32,158 nt of DNA from Pelomyxa schiedti (Eukaryota > Protista > Evosea): contig JAHLWZ010000994.1 of NCBI GenBank assembly GCA_020536535.1, positions 1 to 32,158 of the forward strand, read 5' to 3'. Shown here piece by piece: positions 1-24,649 of this stretch. The position numbers and the translations under genes are program-made. Under the pieces are notes generated by a model. That model had not been told where the DNA came from. It worked only from the letters and a program-made list of their open reading frames with translations, and did not search any database. Within the stretch, counting starts at the first letter, position 1; each line of letters opens with the position of its first letter.

Positions 1-762
1 ATGAGCAGTTCTCCCACAATTGAGCAATTCCGGTCCACACTGCAATCCTTCGCCGGTATGTGTGACTGTTAATGGCTCTTTTTTTTTTGTTTTTTCCAAA
101 CTTGTAGTGTGGTCAACTTGTTATCTTTTTTTATTATTTTTCTCCCATAGTGTAGATGACAGAGACTGGGAGAAGTACCACACCCCTAGGAATTTGGTTC
201 TTGCTATGGTACCACTTTTTCATTAGTATTGCCCTTTTTGTTTAGGATTAATCCGGATGTACACCACAAAACTTGTATGAGTGTAGGTTGGTGAAGTTGG
301 CGAGCTTGCTGAATGCTTTCAGTGGCGTGATGACATGACTGTTGGATTACCAAGAAAGCCTCTCCCTTTTAATGCAATATTAACGGAACCACAACCACAT
401 AAAATAAATCAGCACACCATTTTCCGAATAGCTTCTGCAACGCTTCTTGCATCACCCGCTTTTACTGAGTTTGCATTCTGTATCTAATAATGCTGTCCTC
501 AAATAGATTGCACACCGGAAGAGAAGGAACACATAGGTGAAGAGATAAGTGATATCTTCCTCTATCTGGTTCGGCTTGCTGACAAGTGCGGCATTGATCT
601 ACCAGCAGCGGCAGAAAGAAAGGTATTCCTGTTATACTTCAACTGAGAGCACCCACTCATTTGCCTTCTTTCCAGATTCGCCTCAATGGAATAAAGTATC
701 CAGCTGATGAAGTGAGAGGATCGAGAAAAAAGTACACGGAATATCACTCACACAAATCATAA
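1..762 (+). CDS. DCTPP1: dCTP pyrophosphatase 1-like (MazG-like all-alpha NTP pyrophosphatase), 5 exons
   Basis: Exons ~1-55, 156-208, 287-353, 507-622 and 675-762 splice to MSSSPTIEQFRSTLQSFADDRDWEKYHTPRNLVLAMVGEVGELAECFQWR...EEKEHIGEEISDIFLYLVRLADKCGIDLPAAAERKIRLNGIKYPADEVRGSRKKY. These are the RDWxxFHxPRNL, GEVGEL and EExSD motifs of the DCTPP1 family. The intron 3 donor is atypical. Confidence 0.92.
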
Positions 763-806
763 GAACTAATAACAAACGGGAATTTATTTCCCTATCTTCC
801 AAAATT

Positions 807-3568
807 TTACATTGTGCTACACTTGTCTTTTTGTGGTATTGGTTGTGATGTGGGTTTGGCTGCTTGACAGCGGTTCAGTTCATACAGTACCAATTCCATA
901 AAAGAGTCTGTCTTTGTACTGAGTTTATATTACCAGTCAGAACCGTAGAATGTGTAATAGAAATGAAATTACCGAGTCCGTGAACTTATTTCAATGAAAG
1001 AACAACCAATTGTTTTGGAAAGAGCAATGCCATCGGATCTGGGTACTTGCCGTAAGGGTTCAAGGTCAACCTAAATGTGTGGCTTGGTACTGGAAACCAC
1101 AATATATTTCCACATCCCTATCTACCTTTGTGCCGCAAATTATGAGTGCCGGCCAGTAGGAGGGATAGGAAGAGCACATATCTCGGATTCTTCTAAGCCC
1201 ACCTATGTACTTGGCTAGGTTTTTAAAAGATTGCATGTCTGTTATGCTGTAGAGGAAGACCCAAGCATCAGCTCTGGTAACGTCATATTCTCTAAATGGA
1301 CTTCGAAACCTGTTAGTATTTGAATTCTCTCACAAGTGTAACCTGATCGCAAACTCGTCAGTTGTATCATAAATTATCCACCTAGTTGAGGGCTTGTCAA
1401 TATCAAAGGACTTAGACTGGATGGACATAACTTGATTGTGGTAGAGTCGGGGCAAGTCATGGAACGACTGAAAGTGTCATCAATGTCACTATCCCAGTTT
1501 TCAACACTGGAAATTTATGAGTACAAGAGCATGCAATCTTTAGAGTACAATTTATCTGTGGCCAATAAAATCGCCAGTGCTGACTACAAGTTATTAGGCA
1601 AGTGGGTGTCCCATGAATTTAGTAGTTCGAACCTTTCCAACACCGCAGCTTCCTACGAATATTTCCTTAGGATTCCAATTACTTAGAAAAAATTGAACTC
1701 ACCTAAGAAACTCACTTTGACACCCTCGGAATAGTTTGCGTCGATCTAAAAGGAATGAGGAAAAATGATTGTGGTTAGACACTGATGTTACTGGTTTTAC
1801 TATCGACTCAGGTTTTCCCTTGATACGGACAGACTCCCTCTTCATTGAAAGCTGATAATATACCTCTTTCCAGAATGAATATCTTCGAGATTTCGTTGCA
1901 CTTTGTTCATAATAATCCATGGTGTCTTCTGAGTGTACCTGTAACTTTAATGAACACCGAGTACATTACAACGATAACTCCCAACCAAAAACGCAACATG
2001 AGGTTTCCATAAATGCGGCTGAATGCCGATTCGCCTCAAGTTTCTTGACACGCGAAGCACTCTCCCAAGGTCACCCGCTCTAGGGCACAGTCAATAATAA
2101 GAAGTGAGGAAGCAATCCCTACCCAAGGTATGATAAAATTTTTGCAAGAATGTCACCAGGAAAATCTATGAAGTCCCCATTTGGTGTGCCAGATTCAACT
2201 CCGCCATAATAGTTTATTTTTAAAAGAGTTGAGGTGCTGGTGGTGGAGTTCAAACTCCCACCAAATATCCAAGCAGTGTTGTTATGCTGAACTGTGGATG
2301 CAAAGGAAATAGGGATATATCTGCTTCCTTCCAACTCGATATGGAACCATAATCTGGTCAATGGGAAATACAAGAATGTAACACCTTTTTTTTAAAAAAA
2401 ACAATGAGAAGAACGAAAATGTGGAGGTTAAAACTTGCTCCAATAAAGCAAATGCAATCGGAAAAAGCAATTGCTGTTACTCCCTCAAGTAAACAGTTTG
2501 TTGGAAGTGGAAGTGCCTCCCAGGACATGTGTTCTGGGTCAAGTGATAAGGAAACTAGTTCTTGTTTTGACCCGGGAGTGGGAACTGGGGCAATTTTAGA
2601 GCTGCAACAACCTCGTAATAAAGGAAACTACAGAAGAGTACAAAGAGTCGGGACATGAAATACGAGGCTGTGAAATTCGGATGAAAATTGCAAATGCCAA
2701 TTGGGTGCAGTTGACACCACTTCATGGTTTCCAAATTGAGTTGGTATAAGTCCGCGCAAGCTCCGGAAGTTGTAAATCCACCATATGTGTACATACATTC
2801 CTGGTGTATTTGTGATTAGGTGCAGAAACAAATCCACAAGTCCCCTTTCTAGAGTGAACACATAAAGGTCAAAAAATGGAACGGGAATCGCCCAAAGAAA
2901 GAAAGAATCAAAGAATAGACAACCAAATGTCGCCAACCAACCTGGTGCACAAAAGCATAGTGCCCTGATAGAACAGGAGGGCTATTCTTTGTCTTAACAC
3001 CACGCCAGACCCCTGTCCCATAATACACCCACACCATCACCCCTCTCTCACTTTCCTCGTCGCTTTTCACAGTCCCAACCAGACTCTCAGCATCAGCTGC
3101 TTGGGGGCGAGGGAAGCCGCCCCAAACGTACAGACGCGAATTATGGGAGACGCAGCTCGAGCCCACCAGGCCCGTGGCCGGGCACCCTGCGCCTCGGTCC
3201 CACCGAGGCACCCACAATTTGGTGGCGAGGGAGCACTCCCACGTCGCCTCCGTGCTTCTGCCCCCAACCTGCGACGCAGTGTCTGCATCTGCTTCCCCCG
3301 ACGTTGCGGGATCCCCTTTGGTTAGCGCCGCGATTGGTCCCCAGGAGGTACTAGGCGTGTCCCACCGGTGGCCCCCGCAGACCACCATGCAGTCAGATTG
3401 GAGGAGACCAGCCACCTAGACCCGTTGGCATGTTGTTCCCATGATGGGGAAATTGGCAACAAACAGTAAGTAACTTACATGAGAGTGACAACGGGGAGGC
3501 GAAAACAACGACCAGGCCAACGACTCCTCGGTCTCGTCGGTTACCCACACCGACCCACAACTGGTCAT
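807..3568 (-). CDS. Kelch-repeat + F-box + divergent Ras-like GTPase + CaaX fusion protein (multi-exon)
   Basis: ATG at 3568 (MTSCGSVW...PPRCHSH|VAGLLQSDCMVVCGG). Kelch blades: RLYVWGG, MYTYGG..DLYQLNLETMKW, TAWIFGG. F-box: FIDFPGDILAKILSYLGAGDLGRVLRVSRNLRRIGIQPHLWK (~2180-2005). Ras-like domain: VKVSFLGSCGVGKS...DAWVFLYSITDMQSF...LIICGTKVDL...FIEISSRT, ending KDKCSTM-stop at 807-809. All junctions I traced are phase-compatible GT-AG. Confidence 0.85.
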
Positions 3569-3618
3569 TATGCGAAAAAATCGACAGAGTAGAAACGGAA
3601 AAACCAAAAAAAACTTTT

Positions 3619-5301
3619 TCAGTAATTGTTCCTCCTTTTCTTTGGTAGTGGTGGGCATGGAGTGGACGGTGTTGAAGCGGCGGTGGATGTGTTTGTGCTC
3701 GATGCTTGTGATACACTTGGGGTATGTTGTGTGGTAGTGGTGGTGGTGGTTGTTGAGCCATGGGAGGCTGAGTGGGGGAAACACATAGATAGAAGCTTGA
3801 GCATTGCCTGCTGATTACCGGCCAGGGCGGCCTTCTCCCAAAGTGCACGTGCTTTGTCCATATCTTTAGGTACATATATTCCGAGTTCAAACAGAAGCCC
3901 AAGCCTGAGGATGGAGTCTGAATTGCCGCTATTAATGACTTGGTCATAGAGGAAGTTGGCTAGGCTCAGGTTTTTCTCTACACCCAGGCCGGATTCATAG
4001 CACAAAGCCATAGTAACTTTTGCGTCTGGGTTGTCAGCATCCACAGCCTTCTTCAGAATAGCTATTGCTTTGTTTATGTCACGAGTTACGTTGGGAGCAC
4101 CCATTAAGAGACGCAGGCCCATTTTAGCCATCGCATCATCATTACCCTCGTTGCATGCCCTTTGGAGGAGTGACAAAGATTTGTTCATATCCGCTGGAAC
4201 TCCAATGCCAGTCTGATAGTAGTCACTCAGGGTAACCATGGCATCAGTATCTCCCACCTCAACGGCCTTGTTCAGGAAAAAAGCTGATTGATTGTAATCT
4301 TTTTCAACTCCTGTACCAGCCCTATAGTATCGAGCAAGCCGACGCATTGCAGGCGCGTAACCGCAGTTTGAAGCTCTGAGTAATAACGACACTGCTTTTG
4401 TTGGATTGGTTGGAACTCCGTCGCCGGTCATATAGTGCTCCCCAAGCTGATCCAATGCTTTTACACTCCCTGCTTCTGCAGACCTCTCATAAAGCTCGAT
4501 TGCCTTTGCAACATCTTTGTCAATTCCTTCTCCTTCCTCATAGCAAAGGGCCATATTCCACATTGCATCTGCATTGCCTGCTGCAACGGCCTTTCGCAGG
4601 AGTGCAAAACCTTTGACAAGATCCTTGGGTACTCCTTCGCCGCGCAGATAATATTTACTGAGATAGAGCTCAGAACGCCACCCAATTTCTGGGTCCCAAT
4701 ATTTTGTAACAGCAGCTCTCTGGAATAAATCAATTTCCTTTGCTACATCACGTGCAACTCCTTGGCAAGTTGCATAAATCACCCCAAGGTTAAGCATTGC
4801 AGCAGCATCTCCCATATCGATAGCTTTCTGCAGTAAGGCAACCGCTCTGCCCGAATTGAAACCAACGCCTTCACCACGCAAATAGCACATTCCCAACACC
4901 TGCAGTGCTTTGCTATCTCCAGCATCCGCAGCCCTCTGAAGATAAGGAATCGCGCTGGCCGGATCTGCCCGCACCCCTTTGCCATGAAGAAAGCATTCAG
5001 CAAGAGCCACCATTGCCTTTGCGTTTCCAGCGTCCGCTGCCTGGCGGTAATACTGCAAGGCCATGGCAGGATTCGAGGCAGTTCCGGCGCCTTCCATGTA
5101 CGCGCGCCCGAGCTCATACATCATTCCTGGGTCACCATTGGCCGCTGCAATGTGATACATGGCGAGTCCCAGGGGCTCGTTCGTGCCAATCTCCATCGTC
5201 AGGTTCAAGTTGACATCCTGGCCAGTCTCCTCACATTGCCTGAAAAGTCCCTGTATTTGACGCTCAGCTTGCTGAGCAAGTTCCTGCATGTGTGCCTGCA
5301 T
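3619..5301 (-). CDS. Sel1-like repeat (SLR) protein, about 12 repeats, with Thr/Ser-rich tail
   Basis: Uninterrupted 560-aa ORF with ~36-aa repeats of the form AMxxLGxxYxxGxGVxxDxxKAxxLxxKAAxAG. An acceptor-like 'cacag' just upstream of the ATG means an additional 5' exon is possible. Confidence 0.93.
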   Translation of the reverse strand: MQAHMQELAQQAERQIQGLFRQCEETGQDVNLNLTMEIGTNEPLGLAMYHIAAANGDPGMMYELGRAYMEGAGTASNPAMALQYYRQAADAGNAKAMVALAECFLHGKGVRADPASAIPYLQRAADAGDSKALQVLGMCYLRGEGVGFNSGRAVALLQKAIDMGDAAAMLNLGVIYATCQGVARDVAKEIDLFQRAAVTKYWDPEIGWRSELYLSKYYLRGEGVPKDLVKGFALLRKAVAAGNADAMWNMALCYEEGEGIDKDVAKAIELYERSAEAGSVKALDQLGEHYMTGDGVPTNPTKAVSLLLRASNCGYAPAMRRLARYYRAGTGVEKDYNQSAFFLNKAVEVGDTDAMVTLSDYYQTGIGVPADMNKSLSLLQRACNEGNDDAMAKMGLRLLMGAPNVTRDINKAIAILKKAVDADNPDAKVTMALCYESGLGVEKNLSLANFLYDQVINSGNSDSILRLGLLFELGIYVPKDMDKARALWEKAALAGNQQAMLKLLSMCFPHSASHGSTTTTTTTTQHTPSVSQASSTNTSTAASTPSTPCPPLPKKRRNNY

Positions 5302-5956
5302 GTACGCCTGTGCACGGTAAGAAAGAAATAGAGCAATTTAATTAACAAGGCATATGTCGCCGTTACTAGTAGCACTTATATTAAAATTATTGATACAAAG
5401 CATTGTTAACGGCAAACCCTAGATCGTAGTCTCGCTGCGGAATTATGCTACAATGTATAAATGTGTGCTAACGCTGTAAAAGCAATTAGAAAATAAAAAC
5501 GGTCACGAAGAAACTACCTGCAGTGGTCGTCCTCGACAATTTATTAATTTATTTGATCTTTGTTGAGTATTTAAGCCCGAAAAACGTTGGTACATTATGT
5601 GGTCAGGTCACCGCATCATTTAGTTTTGGCCCTTCTTCCAAGAACAATAATCGGACAAGAGACAGCTTGAGACCAGAAGCACCGCATTCTGGAGAAAACA
5701 ATTCTCATGAACGCTGGCTACTATTGGTGCTTCTTCAGTGTCAAAGGATTGTGGATTTGCAAGGTGAGTCGGTCTGAGAAAAAGGACTCACCCCGACCAG
5801 GGTTAGTGCACCATTGTCAGATTCAGTGGCCATGTGTGTCAATAGCAAAAGCCCGGTTTGAGGGCTGTTAGGCCATGCTTGGCCAAATGAACACTTTTTT
5901 TTGACTCAAAAAAAATGTTGGGTTGTAGGATTGGAGATTCATGCTTTATACAACTT

Positions 5957-6760
5957 TTATGATAGAATACCATGCAATTCATGGTTTTTGAGAATCACAG
6001 CAATACTCAGTGTCACACCCCCAGTGGAGACTGTGTGAAGTTGTGACCGGTCAAGAGGTGATGTTACAACATTGTCATTGGTGAGTTGAACAGCTCCTCC
6101 AACAAAATATGCTATTTGAAATAAACAAAGGGAAAAGAGTGGTGGAGTTACATGTTAGCTCTTCAAACCAGGTCCCTTTTGGTCTCCAAGTAGGGCATGT
6201 GATTGTATGGTACCCAGGGGAACACGGCAGATGCACAAACCCATAGCCACCTAGAGAAATACATATAAATTAGCAGAGTTCCCCACAAATTACTGGCATA
6301 CACAGTTGATTTGTTGCAAATTCATCATGGTGGAACACAGTCAGTTTAATCTTTGGCCAGTGTGCTACAGACTGAGTCCTAAAGTGTAGGTCCAATGGGT
6401 GATCCCATGTGCTCATATCACTATCCTTGTTAGTGGATGTGGTCAAAATAGAGTGTGTCAAATTCCTTACTTATTTACTTTTCATTCCCATAATTTAGTA
6501 CCAACATCATGTCAATCGATTTGACCAACACAACGACAGCAGCCTCCCCACAATTCATTTCTCCTTGTTTTGGTTTTGGGTCGCACACTTACCACAGGAA
6601 CATCGACGTGGGTTTGGCCAACAGGGGTGCCCTCAATGAGAACCCATCCGGCCCCAGGGTCGTGCTCGACTTCGAATTTACAAAACAGCCCACTGCCGCC
6701 GCCCTCCACGCCTCCGAAGCCACGGCCCCCGACTATCTGCCCTATGAAGTGCACGTCCAT
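5957..6760 (-). CDS. B9D2: B9 domain-containing protein 2 (MKS ciliary transition-zone complex)
   Basis: Spliced product: [15 protein letters not shown]...LFCKF...GQTHVDVP|...[20 protein letters not shown]...|[31 protein letters not shown]|..FVGGAVQL...[29 protein letters not shown]. This is collinear with B9D2. Confidence 0.92.
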
Positions 6761-6952
6761 GCTCCCCCCACCCCTCGTGTTATTCTCTCTATGTAATTAT
6801 GGGACAAATACACGCCCAGCACCAACGATACGTCTCGTGTTGGTTTGTTGCTTGTCTGATTACGTGAAAAACAAAAACCTCTTTTTTTTTTCCAAGCGAT
6901 AATATACGATCTGGTAGTGAGAGCCATCGGCGGGGTGTTTGCGCGCAGGAAA

Positions 6953-7714
6953 ATGAGCCGAAGCACAAGCACAACTACAAGCACGCACCGACACCACCAC
7001 CACGACACCACGTCACCCTCAACAACTGCCTCCACTTCCACACCCACATCCACTTCTACCTCAGCGTCCTCACCCTCACCCTCGGCATCGGCGACAACAA
7101 CAACAACTACTAGTAGTACTAGCACTAGTGCAACATCAAGTAGTAGTTCAGCAGGGGGGAAGTACAGGGGGCAGGGAGGCGGGGGCGTGGGCGTGTCGTC
7201 AGGGGGCGGGAGAAGGCACCCCACCACGAGGAAGCTGGTGCGCGACAAGGTGTTCATGGTCACGTCGCCCGCGCTCAGGAGGCTGGCCAGGAAGGCCGGG
7301 ATAACGAGGATGGCCGACGACGCCATTTGGGTAAGTTAGTTCTCATGCTCACGCAAATGCCCGATTGTTATAATTGCGTTAATCTGTCATTGCAAATTGA
7401 CACCCACCAACCCCTCTGTCTATATATATACATGGCATTTTGGCCTCATGCATGACAGAATAAACAATTAAACGTATAAATGGTGGTTGAATAGAAGACT
7501 GACTAAAGTGAAAATTAGATGGCTGGGTAAAAGTGTTCACTCCTCTTATTGATTTCGATAGGTAACAAGAGGTGCCCTGTTTACGTTTGTCACGCATGTC
7601 ACTCGCGATGCTCTGGCCTACTGTGACTTCGCTCAACGCAAGACTGTTATGGTCAGTGATGTCCTCTACGCCCTCAAACGGCAAGGCCAGACTGTATATG
7701 GCTTTGGCCTCTAA
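6953..7714 (+). CDS. Divergent histone H4 variant with long Ser/Thr/His-rich N-terminal extension (2 exons, ~176 aa)
   Basis: Exon 1 is 6953-7330, the GTAAGT..AG intron is 7331-7561, and exon 2 is 7562-7714. The core [34 protein letters not shown]|[50 protein letters not shown] aligns without gaps to the H4 histone fold. Confidence 0.9.
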
Positions 7715-19500: not shown

Positions 19501-21905
19501 GGTTGTCAATAGAGTCACCTTTGATAAAACTGTTAACGTCCACTTTCTCGTGTTCTGTGATTGTGATGAGACAATCTGGGTTGGTTGCTTGAATAAAATA
19601 GTGATTCTGGATGCCTTAACAATGACCATTCAACGATCGATCACTGGTTTTGTTCTTATGACGAACGGAACCTATTAATTACCCTTTGCAGATATTGTCA
19701 GTAGATTTTCATCATGTGTTTATCTGAATAAGCAAGTATGGGGTGCAACGAAAGGGAAAATTCTTGTTTTTGACTGTGAACATAAAGTAAGGCTTTCACA
19801 TATTCATTCCTCTAACTTGGCGTTAGAATCTTGTTGCCACCCTTGTTGGTCATGAAACGGACATTTCGTGGCTTCAAACATGTGAAGGGTATTACGTTTT
19901 ACATGGAAATTCTATAACGTTCATGGAAACAGGTATATGTGCTCATGTGACCAAGAGGGCTCGATAATTTTCTGGCATCCAAGACACTTTACCGCTGTTA
20001 AAACTATAACAATAAAAGGTTGTTTTATTACCAGAATGTTTTATTTTTCCAGGTAATCCTTGAATTATTTTTGTTACCTGAAATTCATTTAGCCTCCTAT
20101 TTTATACGTTTGTTCATCCCAACTCTGGTGTTGGTTGTTACTTGTTGGGAAAACTTCCTTGTAAGTTCTTGACTTCTGTACATAATAACTAACAAATCTT
20201 AAGCTTTTCCAGAGGAGGATCCTCTTTTGGAGATAACTTCTTTAGGCAGTAGTACTGATGGTACCATCCGACGGAGGGTACCTTCTTCAGAAATTACTCC
20301 TTCTTTTTGGCAGGAGACTCACCAACCAAGAACATCCCCCCCTCTGCATGATCCTGAAGGGCTTTCTGTCTCCGCCCCTGGTGCGAGTACGCCACCTCAT
20401 TCAGCTACATCCGCACTTGCTCAGGTTCGGCGGCGGGCCACATTTTTAAGTCTTCGTCATAGCCATGGTCACACCAAAAGTATGTCTGTTTCAGGTCCAA
20501 TTTTCAGTTGTACCTCACCCCCAAATAACCTGTCACCACCATTATCCACTTCGTCCTCTTCTCTATCCCCCAGGAATGGGGAACCTACAGATCAATTTTG
20601 TGCCCCCGCAAAGCCCTTACCTACAAAAATTGGCCACACACACATTTCACAAATACCATCATCACAGAGTTCTCCAACCATAAGTACAACCAAAACCCGT
20701 GCACTAGGGTCTTCGTTTTTCCTCTCAATGAGGAAAAAGGCTCCAACTCCTCCACCGTCAGAAAGGATCACCGGCGAGCCTCCCTGTATTCCTGAGACAC
20801 TAAGAAATCACCCAGAGAGAGATGAGATCAAACCAATTCATCTAGATACTACTAAGCAATCTCGGCACAGTACTGAAAATCTGGAAGCCAAACTCGATTC
20901 GACAGTTCCTGAGAAGCTTCCGACACCTGATACTAGCCCTGAGCCAGAAACAAAAAAAGAATCACCAAAAAGAGGGCGAGCACTGTCGAGACATGAAATT
21001 GAGCCGTTAGAAACAGGGGAAAAACCAGTTTCAACACAAGGAGAGAGTGAAATGAATAGTGGTGAAAACACTACCAAAGTTGAGAAGCAGCTACTACGAG
21101 AGACAAGAATGAAAGCAAGGGATATTGAACGAGCTCTCTCAGAACTTCGGGCTTCTTCATCTCAGGAACCAATTGACGTGCTTGCAGTGCTTTATGGCGA
21201 TGGTACTCACTTGGAAGAAAGAGTCACAAAAAATATTGAGAGGGAAGAAAGAAAGAAAGCGAGAGAAGAAAGAAAGAAACAAAGGAACAAAGAAAGAGGA
21301 AGTGAAACAGGGGGAGGAACAGATGGCAGGACAACACCTTCAGACGATATATCTACAGCAAGCTCTGTGACAAGTACACTGGAGAGCAAACCGGATTCAC
21401 CAAGAGAGAGCGAGGGAAATACCGAGTTGGAAAAAAAACCCAAAAAACGGCACCACCGGCAGCACTCACGTGACCATTCACACGATGAAACACCCAGTGT
21501 CACACCCGACACCCAAGGAATCCCTGGAGGGGAACCGAAGCCACAGCCTGACCAGCCTGGCTCTGAACCTACTGAAACAACATCACCGCGAGAGGCTACT
21601 GAACCAAGCGGCGATGGTGCATCACTGCTTTCACCCAGGACACCACGCTCACACGGCCACACACACAGCCATTCCCACAGCCACACCCATAAAAAGGCAC
21701 ACCACTTCAAGTCTACCACGTTGACAAGTGACACACCCTGCAAGCACTGCAGCGGCACAATAACAGGTCAATCCCGCGACCTTGTTGCTTTACTAACTTG
21801 AAATTAGGTTCTGTGGAATCAAAAGTTTATCTCTGTACACTATGTGGGTTTGCTTTCCACAAGGAATGCATGGAGTCGGCTAAAGCCACAGCATGCGATT
21901 CCTGA
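13268..21905 (+). CDS. Roco/LRRK-family protein: degenerate GTPase-like N-terminus, LRR, Roc, COR, TKL kinase, beta-propeller-like region, low-complexity linker, C1 domain
   Basis: LRR: LNLSHNRLSQVP. Roc: RVRLMIVGSENVGKTT...STDGIEI...VWDLGGQSVFLPTHQFFL...VILVGTHAD. COR: LPMGIFGRLLVRILH. Kinase: IASGGFGKVYKG, VAVKEL, HRDLRSPN, DFG, WLAPE. C1: HHFKSTTLTSDTPCKHCSGTITG|SVESKVYLCTLCGFAFHKECMESAKATAC, stop at 21903-21905. The start codon is uncertain and not every LRR, COR or propeller junction was resolved. Confidence 0.88.
13510..13544 (+). repeat. Poly-T homopolymer (35 nt) inside an intron
   Basis: Directly visible. It lies between the GTGACT donor (~13492) and the CTAG acceptor (13564). Confidence 0.9.
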
Positions 21906-22076: not shown

Positions 22077-24069
22077 TCACTCGTTTGGGCTCTCTTCAGT
22101 CACAGGGTACACCAACTGATTAACAAACCGTGAATAAAGCGCACTGGGGAAACATCTCTGAGCAAAAGTACTCAATGAAGCAACAGCACATCCACCTGTA
22201 TCAACAACAAATAAGGAAAAAACCAAAGTCATGGGGGAGGAAGAAAAGAAGAAAGGGAGAAACCTATCCATGTGGCAAAAGACCGGTTCGGGTGTGCTGT
22301 TATCTTCACCTTTGTGGGAAAAAAAATTGGTTTGTGGGGTTGTCACATTGAAAGGGGGAAAAGAAACAAACGTTGGTGCCGAGTTTGGTCATTTCTCTGG
22401 TGAGTCTCTTGGCAAATCCCGGAAACATCGAGTTTCCACCAGCAAGAACTTTGTTGGAGAAAAGGGAAAAAGGGAAGTGCGTTAAAACGCGTGGCACGTG
22501 GCCACGAGTTCAAAAGATACCAATGTTGTGGCTCATCACTTCTTGGAGCTCAGGGCTGCAACTGAGAATTGAACTGCGGCACATGCCAGGAACACCTTCC
22601 TGCGGAGGTCTCCAAGAACCGTTAAATGAACTGCAGCTCTCAAGCAAAGATGGTGTGAACATAGGTTCCGCCGTCCTGTGTTGGCATCAGCAATTTTGGG
22701 TGTCGGCACTGTTTGTGGGATGTGGAACCGTATCAATTCGGGTCCTAGCTCCACTGTTTGTCCATCAGGAAGGGAATAAGTGGTTCGTCGCTTCTCCTTT
22801 GTGAAAAACTGTGAACAACAACAAAGAATACCCGCAATCCCACCCCACTCTGGGCTGGCATTGAGTGTGTTGAATACCTGCACCTCAGTTTCAAAGTTTT
22901 GGGCAACATATGCCAGATTGTGCTTGATGTAATCTATTGATTCAGTGGAGAGTGACAAGGTTTCGCGTAGGTGTGTCAAGATATGCCTGCCACCCAGGTT
23001 TATACTCCTGTAGCTTGCTTTGATCACTTGACCTTTGTTTTGCTTTTGAACAAAAATATAAATGGTGGAAGTGCATGTATAAACTGAAGAATTAAAGCAT
23101 TGAATCAATCACATACCTTCGGAAATGGGTGTTACCCTTGTGTAATGTTCTCCACAGTCCACAACAAGGCCAGAAGTTCTCCCGGTTGAATACAGGGCCA
23201 ACAGTTCTGAGGGCACCATTAACACTGCAGCAGCTGTATAGTCCGCTTCTAGCATGCCATTAACCAATCTTTCACGCTCTGATTTCTCCATCTCCAGTGT
23301 AGATTGTTCAGCGAAGATGATTGGTGAATTCTCTGCACCCAGGAATTTGACACCATGCTTGACCATCTGTTTGGTTTTTTTCAGTCGCATTGTCACTTGA
23401 CACTCCTCCCCACTTACCTCCAAAACTCTTCCTGTATTCATGACTCCGTCACTCTCAACTAAAAAGTTGGTGATGCCAAAGTTCCTGCCCCAGTATTGAT
23501 CCGCTGAGTGGTGCAGGTGTGAGTTGATTGACAGAAAGTCAAATGGGGGCACCGCGTCACAGCTGTATCCCATTCGGGACCGTGCTGCCCCAATGTCAGC
23601 AACAACAGCAGGGCGGTGAGATTCGCCAGCCCAGGCGTCCATCCAGTCCTTCACTGGGTTCCCACTTATGTCTGCCAGTTCTCCACAAATGACAGTCTCA
23701 ACACCACCATCATCAGGCACATCAACAACATTTCTGTATTCCCCATTCTCTAGCACCCATGGTCTGGAAGCTGTTGTGTGGTGTGTTGTTTCAGAGCATG
23801 AGTCCCTGATATCTTCACCACAAAAAAACACAAAAAAAAAAAAAGGGGACCCACACACAATCACAGTGAGGATCGCCATCCAGAAAGAACATGTATTGGT
23901 GTTTGCCAGGAGGCAGTGACAATTGGAGCGACGGAGTTGGGTCCGTGAACCACCGGTGGCGCATCAGTCGTCGCTCCCAGTTGTCGAAACTGCATGCCAG
24001 CTCCACCCGTACCCAATTCCCCTGCTGTTCACCCCATGATGGTGCTCGAAACGAAACAGAACGCTTCAT
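22077..24069 (-). CDS. CBM48/AMPK-beta-type glycogen-binding domain fused to a divergent actin-related protein
   Basis: N-terminal VELACSFDNWERRLM...LQLSLPPGKHQYMFFLDG. Actin fold follows: AVVADIGAARSRMGY, LALYSTGRTSGLVVDCGEHYTRVTPISEG, INLGGRHILTHL, YSLPDGQTVELGPELIR|TAEPMFTP, VLAGGNSMFPGFAKRLTREM, WIGGCAVASLSTF. Stop at 22077-22079. Confidence 0.87.
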
Positions 24070-24649
24070 GGCACTCACTGCTCGTTCTCAATTCCGTTTG
24101 GTGAGGGACGGTGGGTTTGGTTGATGTACTGTTTTTGAATCAAAGGGTCTTCGTCGTTGGGGCTGGTAGCCCCCAACCCGGTCATGGACCCTGCGCCACA
24201 ACAGACGTCATTCCTGTGTGAGGGCCACCAAGGTAGTGACCCGCAACAAAAATAGGTGCCGATCTCTAGGTGTGAATCGCAACAAAGTAATCAACAATAA
24301 ACTCTTGTGTTCGTATTCGGGCTTCTTTCTCCCTTACTACACAAGTAAAACAACACCCCAGCACACCTCACAGTGTGGTGGTCACTATCCAAACCCAATC
24401 TACCTCAGCACAGACTCCATCCCTTTTTGTCTTGTTACAAATTCCCTTTTCTCTTGGAAAAACAAAAAAAACACTTGTGTAGTTACTTAGACCACACCAA
24501 ATGCCACGTGTCATAGCCAGCCAATCTACTCTGTCCAATGTTGTTGTGCTTTCCCAACAGCCACTTCGAGTTTACAAGAAAAAAACAGTTGGCGTACAAG
24601 ATGACTGACAGGTTGCCGCTCTCCGGCAGGTGCTTTTTTTAGTGGGTTA

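Follow-up and report, generated by a model that had tools for sequence, protein, structure and literature searches.

One gene of nine exons, located on the minus strand of Pelomyxa schiedti contig C994 (22077–24069), very probably joins a CBM48 of the AMPK-beta type to a divergent actin-like protein, as judged from its own sequence and from that of its paralogues. It is a transcribed member of a Pelomyxa-specific family of CBM48-actin-like genes. The fusion is a new combination of known parts, namely CBM48 and the actin fold. This architecture had been proposed in the original prediction and is borne out by Pfam and PDB matches, by the loci of the paralogues and by structural models of one of them, P0021. 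The motifs named there, SFDNW, LSLPPGKHQYMFFLDG, RNVVDV, DIGAARSR and DCGEH, all occur in the minus-strand translation where they had been placed. Furthermore, a glycogen-rich anaerobic amoeba had been guessed at as the host, which agrees with its identity as Pelomyxa schiedti.

Gene structure and the probable junction between the CBM48 and actin-like exons

Within the window (the whole stretch of DNA that was analysed, 32,158 nt) the gene runs from an ATG at 24069 to a stop at 22077, and its product comprises about 477 aa, by arithmetic from the exon map. An in-frame stop is present six codons upstream of this ATG. The annotated product of the locus is P0001 (KAH3743398.1, 'actin 2 [Pelomyxa schiedti]'). 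Exons 2–9 were placed by mapping P0001 back onto the window; the introns of this map are 51–84 nt in length and GT-AG throughout (Table 1). Introns are numerous in the published genome of P. schiedti, at 7.4 per gene (PMC8887013).

Exon 1 spans the CBM from its strand 1 through the FFLDG strand and is in phase 1 at its end. Together with roughly 18 codons at the start of exon 2 it encodes the CBM48 beta-sandwich, with which the product begins without any preceding segment. The linker within exon 2 measures approximately 35 residues and has a conserved W-x3-W helix, corresponding to the predicted helix at residues 110–120 of P0021. The actin fold beyond this linker is complete, though very divergent. 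Intron 2 mimics coding sequence in the raw ORF because it is in frame and stop-free; in the paralogues a TGA is present at this site.

Table 1. Features of the CBM48-actin-like gene, in the direction of transcription (positions are those of the window)
Feature	Positions	Strand	Evidence
Exon 1: start codon and first 70 CBM48 codons	23859..24069	-	Pfam AMPK1_CBM, PDB AMPK beta CBMs
Intron 1, inferred, 88 nt, GT..AG, T-rich	23771..23858	-	paralogue indels and paralogue model introns
Exon 2, start: last CBM48 strands, ending NGEYRNVVDV	23718..23770	-	Pfam match and model of P0021
Exon 2, rest: linker, actin subdomain 1	23418..23717	-	Pfam Actin, P0001 exon map
Phosphate-1 loop DIGAARSR (exon 2)	23574..23597	-	
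Intron 2, 51 nt, GTAAGT..CAG	23367..23417	-	P0001 exon map
Exon 3: actin fold	23117..23366	-	Pfam Actin, P0001 exon map
Phosphate-2 loop DCGEH (exon 3)	23145..23159	-	
Intron 3, 84 nt, GTATGT..AAG	23033..23116	-	exact RNA contig
Exon 4: actin fold	22878..23032	-	P0001 exon map, RNA contig
Exon 5: actin fold, YSLPDG motif	22729..22796	-	P0001 exon map
Exon 6: actin subdomain 3/4, insertion in hydrophobic-plug region	22521..22675	-	P0001 exon map, alignment
Exon 7: VLAGGNSMFPGF adenosine loop	22372..22448	-	Pfam Actin, P0001 exon map
Exon 8	22264..22309	-	P0001 exon map
Exon 9: divergent C-terminal tail unlike that of actin, and stop codon	22077..22195	-	P0001 exon map, alignment

The gene is not alone in its genome. 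Also at the loci C1624, C983, C610 and C960 a CBM exon immediately precedes actin-like exons of the same strand, and two short contigs have further CBM exons at their ends. The family has three subfamilies and no fewer than five distinct copies, with an exon order common to all. The copy on C994 (hereafter the C994 copy) belongs to subfamily A, its closest paralogues being C983 and C1624, and subfamily B includes C610 and C935. For two loci the GenBank models join CBM and actin exons: C983, with the 483 aa protein P0021, and C960, with P0003. Both proteins carry PF16561 as well as PF00022.

In P0021 the Pfam match to the CBM crosses the exon junction, which lies between residues 70 and 71. It covers residues 21–91 and profile positions 13–81 of 85, and reaches 38.8 bits across the junction, compared with 27.9 bits when the exon is taken by itself. 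Therefore, the last CBM strands share exon and frame with the phosphate-1 loop. The N-terminal residues of exon 2 also form the last strands in the structural model of P0021 residues 1–100, and a phase-1 intron is present at the homologous place in three out of three paralogue GenBank models. At two of the loci, C960 and C610, no ATG precedes the actin domain within exon 2; nonetheless, the stretch from the acceptor to the actin domain is conserved as protein in both. A separate translation start at the DWMDAW Met of exon 2 was discarded, as that Met is missing from the same two loci.

Between subfamilies, the dN/dS of the CBM exon is 0.12–0.23 at a dS above 1.3, with a value of about 0.2 for the C994 copy against subfamilies B and C, and the start codon of exon 1 is conserved. 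Judged by such ratios, the CBM exon evolves as coding sequence under purifying selection.

The junction which fits the paralogues has its donor after 23859, placed by homology with P0021, and its acceptor AG at 23772–23771, so that exon 2 starts at 23770. A second possible in-frame pair consists of donor 23855/23854 and acceptor 23765/23764. Since a donor within a (GT)n run can be placed in any of the three phases, joinability in frame is weak evidence alone. From 23858 to approximately 23790, indels of 7, 2 and 5 nt distinguish the three close copies, and because these indels break the frame, the stretch around 23814 is to be regarded as intronic. The original prediction had set the junction at about 23859/23814. 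Its donor is the one supported by the paralogue models, but the acceptor is probably wrong and was given up in favour of 23771/23770: the paralogues have frame-breaking indels around 23814, and the equivalent AG is in another phase.

The two domains, their relatives and their transcripts

With the Pfam profile AMPK1_CBM (PF16561, cut-off 26.8 bits), exon 1 alone yields 26.2 bits and the exon-1 ORF running into the intron 27.2 bits. The match of exon 1 has an E value of 5e-6 to 9e-6 and covers profile positions 10–60 of 85; against the solved CBMs of AMPK beta1 and beta2 in the PDB, E is 3e-4. The paralogues P0021 (38.8 bits) and P0003 (34.1 bits) both score above the cut-off. Structures were predicted for P0021, which is 86% identical to the C994 copy in exon 1 and 79% overall. 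What is said here of the joined protein draws on such GenBank models of paralogues and on references for the single exons. When the AlphaFold2 model of its residues 1–100 (pLDDT 79.8) was submitted to Foldseek, the best PDB match was the AMPK beta1 CBM 1z0n_A (E 1.9e-7, TM 0.89, rmsd 2.1, about 33% identity), and approximately 45 matches ranked next are also AMPK or SNF1 beta CBMs. This result, obtained with the paralogue, supports the CBM48 fold that had been assumed for the N-terminal module. Pfam scans of P0021, P0003 and P0001 gave only AMPK1_CBM and Actin-type families; the AMPKBI C-terminal domain, by which AMPK beta binds the alpha and gamma subunits, was absent from these three proteins.

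CBM48 is a mobile module in the genome of P. schiedti. Seven of the twelve AMPK1_CBM matches in this genome belong to the CBM48-actin-like family. On other proteins of this species, one copy (64.7 bits) follows an HD-domain hydrolase, and a second one is situated in a long ORF without further Pfam match.

Pfam Actin (PF00022) matches P0001 with 190 bits and P0021 with 183.8 bits, in the latter over profile positions 3–394 of 410. The model of the full P0021 (pLDDT 80.1, pTM 0.75) consists of a strand-rich N-terminal domain, the helix 110–120 and a confident actin fold, which compares to G- and F-actin with TM values of 0.82–0.87. The last approximately 25 residues of P0021 are unrelated to actin and were modelled with low confidence, the pLDDT being below 50 over the last 15.

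All of the best 60 PDB sequence matches of P0021 are conventional actins (E about 3e-48, about 30% identity); no Arp is among these 60, though the PDB contains Arps. Because the best PDB matches are all conventional actins and the close relatives are restricted to P. schiedti, the actin-fold part is, by sequence comparison, an orphan actin-like protein outside Arp1–Arp11. The designation as actin-related protein (Arp), with which this part had been introduced, is not supported: conventional actin comes first, and no relative outside Pelomyxa was found among 1.84 billion representative proteins. When exon 2 was used by itself, the 'Actin, putative' chains of PDB 9e5c gave the highest score, and GenBank names P0021 a 'flagellar inner arm' actin. 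An axonemal actin-like reading was rejected, as the full-length paralogue puts conventional actins first by a wide margin.

In an alignment of P0021 to yeast actin, D11, G13, D154, G156 and G301–G302 are kept, and the replacements S14A, G15A, K18R, S155C, D157E and G158H are found. Q137 corresponds to P or S and H161 to R, with the same residues in the C994 copy. In actin, Q137 and H161 position the hydrolytic water. Compared to yeast actin, furthermore, the D-loop is shorter and there is an insertion in the hydrophobic-plug region. The phosphate-1 loop of C960 is canonical (DIGSGRTR). Judged by its residues, the actin fold of the C994 copy is probably non-hydrolysing. Nucleotide binding may be retained in a weakened form, and we infer that ATP is hydrolysed very slowly or not at all and that canonical co-polymerisation is absent. 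An actin-fold energy sensor, which had been offered as one possible function, is unlikely because the phosphate loops are degraded and both Q137 and H161 are replaced.

For exons 2–9 the dN/dS is 0.35–0.51. By this measure, these exons are fast-evolving and still constrained. Compared with its closest paralogues, C983 and C1624, the C994 copy has a dN/dS of 0.37–0.51, which indicates relaxed constraint.

A search with exon 2 in the representative proteins gave three matches with E<1e-10, all three from P. schiedti; the best representative match outside this species has an E of 7e-6. A word-index protein search adds only distant actin-like proteins with an identity of at most 33%. The same type of search remained without candidates for the CBM exon, a blank that says little, given its length window and word limits, and with residues 1–100 of P0021 it returned P0021 alone, which for these same limits carries little weight. 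In the ESM Atlas, the feature search had no usable match, and the nearest clusters of the structure search were Actin or ACTL7A_N + Actin, with a CBM in none of them. A literature search revealed no paper linking AMPK1_CBM or CBM48 to an actin-fold protein, and the fusion is absent from the papers that mention P. schiedti actin. As far as these searches reach, the family to which the C994 gene belongs is known from Pelomyxa alone.

Transcript data came from RNA run X1, a single-cell transcriptome from the study of the published genome. Its record 3 joins 22881–23030 to 23115–23181 with 0 mismatches, 84 nt being skipped, and intron 3 is the only intron of the C994 copy with RNA confirmation in this run. 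Other contigs of X1, about 90% alike and probably derived from paralogues, are spliced at homologous introns.

Sugar contacts and alternative explanations

For the contact residues the numbering of rat beta1 is used. N150 we take to be a further glucan contact of AMPK beta1, as in the structure 1z0n. Glycogen binding of AMPK beta1 is abolished by W100G and by K126Q and reduced by W133L (PMC6274970). W100 is kept in all copies of the Pelomyxa family. At the three other positions the C994 copy has M for K126, P for W133 and R for N150, as have C983 and C1624, which leaves it with one out of four contacts. In subfamily B (C610 and C935), K126 is kept, W133 is lost and N150 is K. C960 retains W100, K126, W133 and N150, four out of four.

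From the contact residues kept, glucan binding is plausible for the ancestor and for C960 and doubtful for the C994 copy. As C960 keeps all four, glucan binding is probably ancestral. For the family as such, canonical glycogen binding has roughly even odds, and C960 is the member most likely to be a true glycogen binder. For the C994 copy we consider canonical glycogen binding doubtful. This copy probably binds glycogen weakly, has a different ligand or reaches glycogen via a partner. The earlier suggestion of a glycogen adaptor is weakened for it, as only W100 is kept of the four contacts.

It is conceivable, if rather unlikely, that the CBM48 of the family, or at least of subfamily A, serves as a protein–protein docking module without glucan binding, like the AMPK beta CBM in its packing against the kinase lobe. 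In that case, the fusion would be real and glycogen irrelevant. The exchanges K126M, W133P and N150R, common to the C994 copy, C983 and C1624, would fit such a role, as would the lack of W133 in subfamily B, considering that W100G and K126Q suffice to abolish glycogen binding of AMPK beta1 (PMC6274970); moreover, the domain is still under purifying selection. However, this would not explain why C960 keeps W100, K126, W133 and N150 and why W100 is found in all copies, and no docking partner is known.

A further alternative takes the GenBank model of the gene as correct. This model starts with ATG 23879 in another frame (MAILTVIV) and has an intron from 23854 to 23771, and for these two reasons KAH3743398.1 is without a CBM. 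The join of 23855 to 23770 breaks the CBM frame. The product would be a 415-aa actin-like protein and the CBM exon a 5' leader or a decaying remnant. The pipeline behind KAH3743398.1 combined Augustus, PASA and EVM and made use of transcript data, and run X1 shows no RNA over exon 1, its depth being zero over 23328–24400, a span including exon 1 and intron 1. Yet the very same pipeline joined CBM and actin exons in P0021 and P0003. Moreover, the CBM frame is under purifying selection with a conserved start codon, whereas the MAILTVIV start, 8 residues long, sits in another frame of this conserved exon, and the last CBM strands, missing from exon 1, are encoded by exon 2. Thus, we regard the GenBank model as improbable; the N-terminus of KAH3743398.1 appears to be mis-modelled and the name 'actin 2' to be wrong.

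Least probable of all is that the C994 copy represents a recent duplicate in decay, transcribed and functionless, as its eroded sugar contacts, its degraded phosphate loops (S14A, G15A, G158H) and the dN/dS of 0.37–0.51 against C983 and C1624 might suggest, for the substitutions are common to C983 and C1624 and therefore predate the duplication, the reading frame is open in each of the nine exons and the introns are GT-AG, dN/dS stays below 1 and an exact spliced RNA contig exists.

Proposed function and comparison with known systems

The explanation which we favour as a whole, with chances slightly better than even, is that of a fused gene whose CBM directs a non-hydrolysing actin-fold scaffold to glycogen. 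CBM48 would be the targeting module, placing the actin-fold domain on alpha-glucan (glycogen) particles, analogous to the CBM48 of AMPK beta, of the phosphatase SEX4 and of the plant PTST adaptors. On glycogen, the actin-fold domain would probably act as a structural or adaptor subunit and not as an ATP-hydrolysing polymer, because Q137 and H161 are replaced, the loops are degraded, the plug region has an insertion and the C-terminal tail bears no relation to that of actin. Actin-fold proteins usually gain their roles via binding partners, not via fused targeting domains.

Pelomyxa species are known for their glycogen bodies. PMC10579272 cites a work entitled 'Pelomyxa doughnuta ... unusual nucleus-glycogen association'. 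A more far-reaching idea, which we put forward as speculation and consider quite unlikely, is a Pelomyxa-specific glycogen-anchored scaffold of actin-fold subunits, either a coat or a filament, that builds, positions or moves the large glycogen bodies. Sugar-binding members such as C960 would then be the anchors, and sugar-blind members such as the C994 copy would provide further subunits. If this scaffold reading were true, a cytoskeleton-type protein would for the first time be seen to connect directly with a storage polysaccharide. Already if the CBM targets glycogen, the family would offer a direct molecular handle on the organisation of Pelomyxa glycogen bodies and, furthermore, a natural case in which an actin fold has been put to new use as a non-hydrolysing scaffold.

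Among known systems, the CBM of AMPK/SNF1 beta (PF16561; 1z0n, 4yef, 4yee) is the best match in sequence and in fold. It has in common with the Pelomyxa module a beta-sandwich of the same length and the motifs FxxW, PxGxHxYxF and NN-I/V-x-V. Unlike AMPK beta, the Pelomyxa protein is without AMPKBI and without the kinase context, an actin fold following instead, and K126, W133 and N150 are replaced in the C994 copy. With conventional actin (PF00022) the family shares the complete four-subdomain fold, seen in the P0021 model (TM 0.82–0.87), but it differs in its identity of only about 30%, the shorter D-loop, the plug insertion, the unrelated tail and the N-terminal CBM48. ACTL7A (ACTL7A_N + Actin), represented by a cluster among the closest structures of the ESM Atlas (TM 0.70/0.76), likewise has a divergent actin fold after a separate N-terminal domain; however, this N-terminal domain is unrelated, there is no orthology and ACTL7A is a testis protein of animals.

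The plant phosphatase SEX4 and the PTST adaptors are CBM48-targeted proteins of glucan metabolism. In comparison to these, the Pelomyxa family differs in its partner domain, an actin fold, which according to the literature search has been reported for no CBM48 protein. The structure of SEX4 (PDB 3nme) is among the fold matches of the P0021 residues 1–100 model, and the likeness lies in the proposed principle: in SEX4 and the PTST adaptors, a CBM48 brings a partner domain which itself is not carbohydrate-active to glycogen or starch.

Database records and gene models

In GenBank the gene is represented by KAH3743398.1 ('actin 2'), which lacks the CBM because the model begins (window 23855-23879, minus strand) with an ATG that lies within the conserved CBM exon but belongs to a different frame. 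This record looks both mis-modelled and misnamed. For the paralogue model P0021, the name 'actin, flagellar inner arm intermediate chain' has no visible basis. Within the actin domain, one intron keeps the reading frame and contains no stop codon (Table), so that a raw reading of the open frame adds 17 false residues; at the place of this intron the paralogues have a TGA. The subfamily-B copy has its exon-2 segment twice, flanking a run of N (contig C610, 736-1751), and both segments were included in the GenBank model P0002. This doubling probably arose as an artefact when the single-cell assembly was scaffolded.

Table. Location of features in the window and on other P. schiedti contigs
Feature	Location	Strand	Remarks
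Intron, 51 nt	window 23367-23417	-	in frame, stop-free
Open frame, 524 aa	window 20227-21801	+	Ser/Pro/Thr/His-rich; convergent with gene 3' end
HD-domain hydrolase then CBM48, one open frame	C525 (L001), 916-1719	+	CBM48 strong, 64.7 bits
C-terminal half of CBM48, opening a 357-aa frame	C702 (L006), 724-1794	-	31.8 bits

Flanking sequences

Immediately upstream of the gene lies what looks like a high-copy repeat (window 24252-24400). Here the contig depth in X2-X4, three runs, probably of DNA, which cover the whole stretch, rises from about 30-100 to 1,200-7,600, and many of their contigs terminate. On the other side, the convergent open frame gave no Pfam match; its end is rich in His and contains a Cys/His motif.

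Other CBM48 proteins of P. schiedti

Twelve CBM48 matches were found in the P. schiedti genome, seven of them within the actin-like family. In the frame on C702, Pfam found nothing besides the CBM48 half. Like the CBM48-actin family of this genome, the hydrolase on C525 is an unusual fusion involving CBM48. As a module, CBM48 appears promiscuous in P. schiedti.
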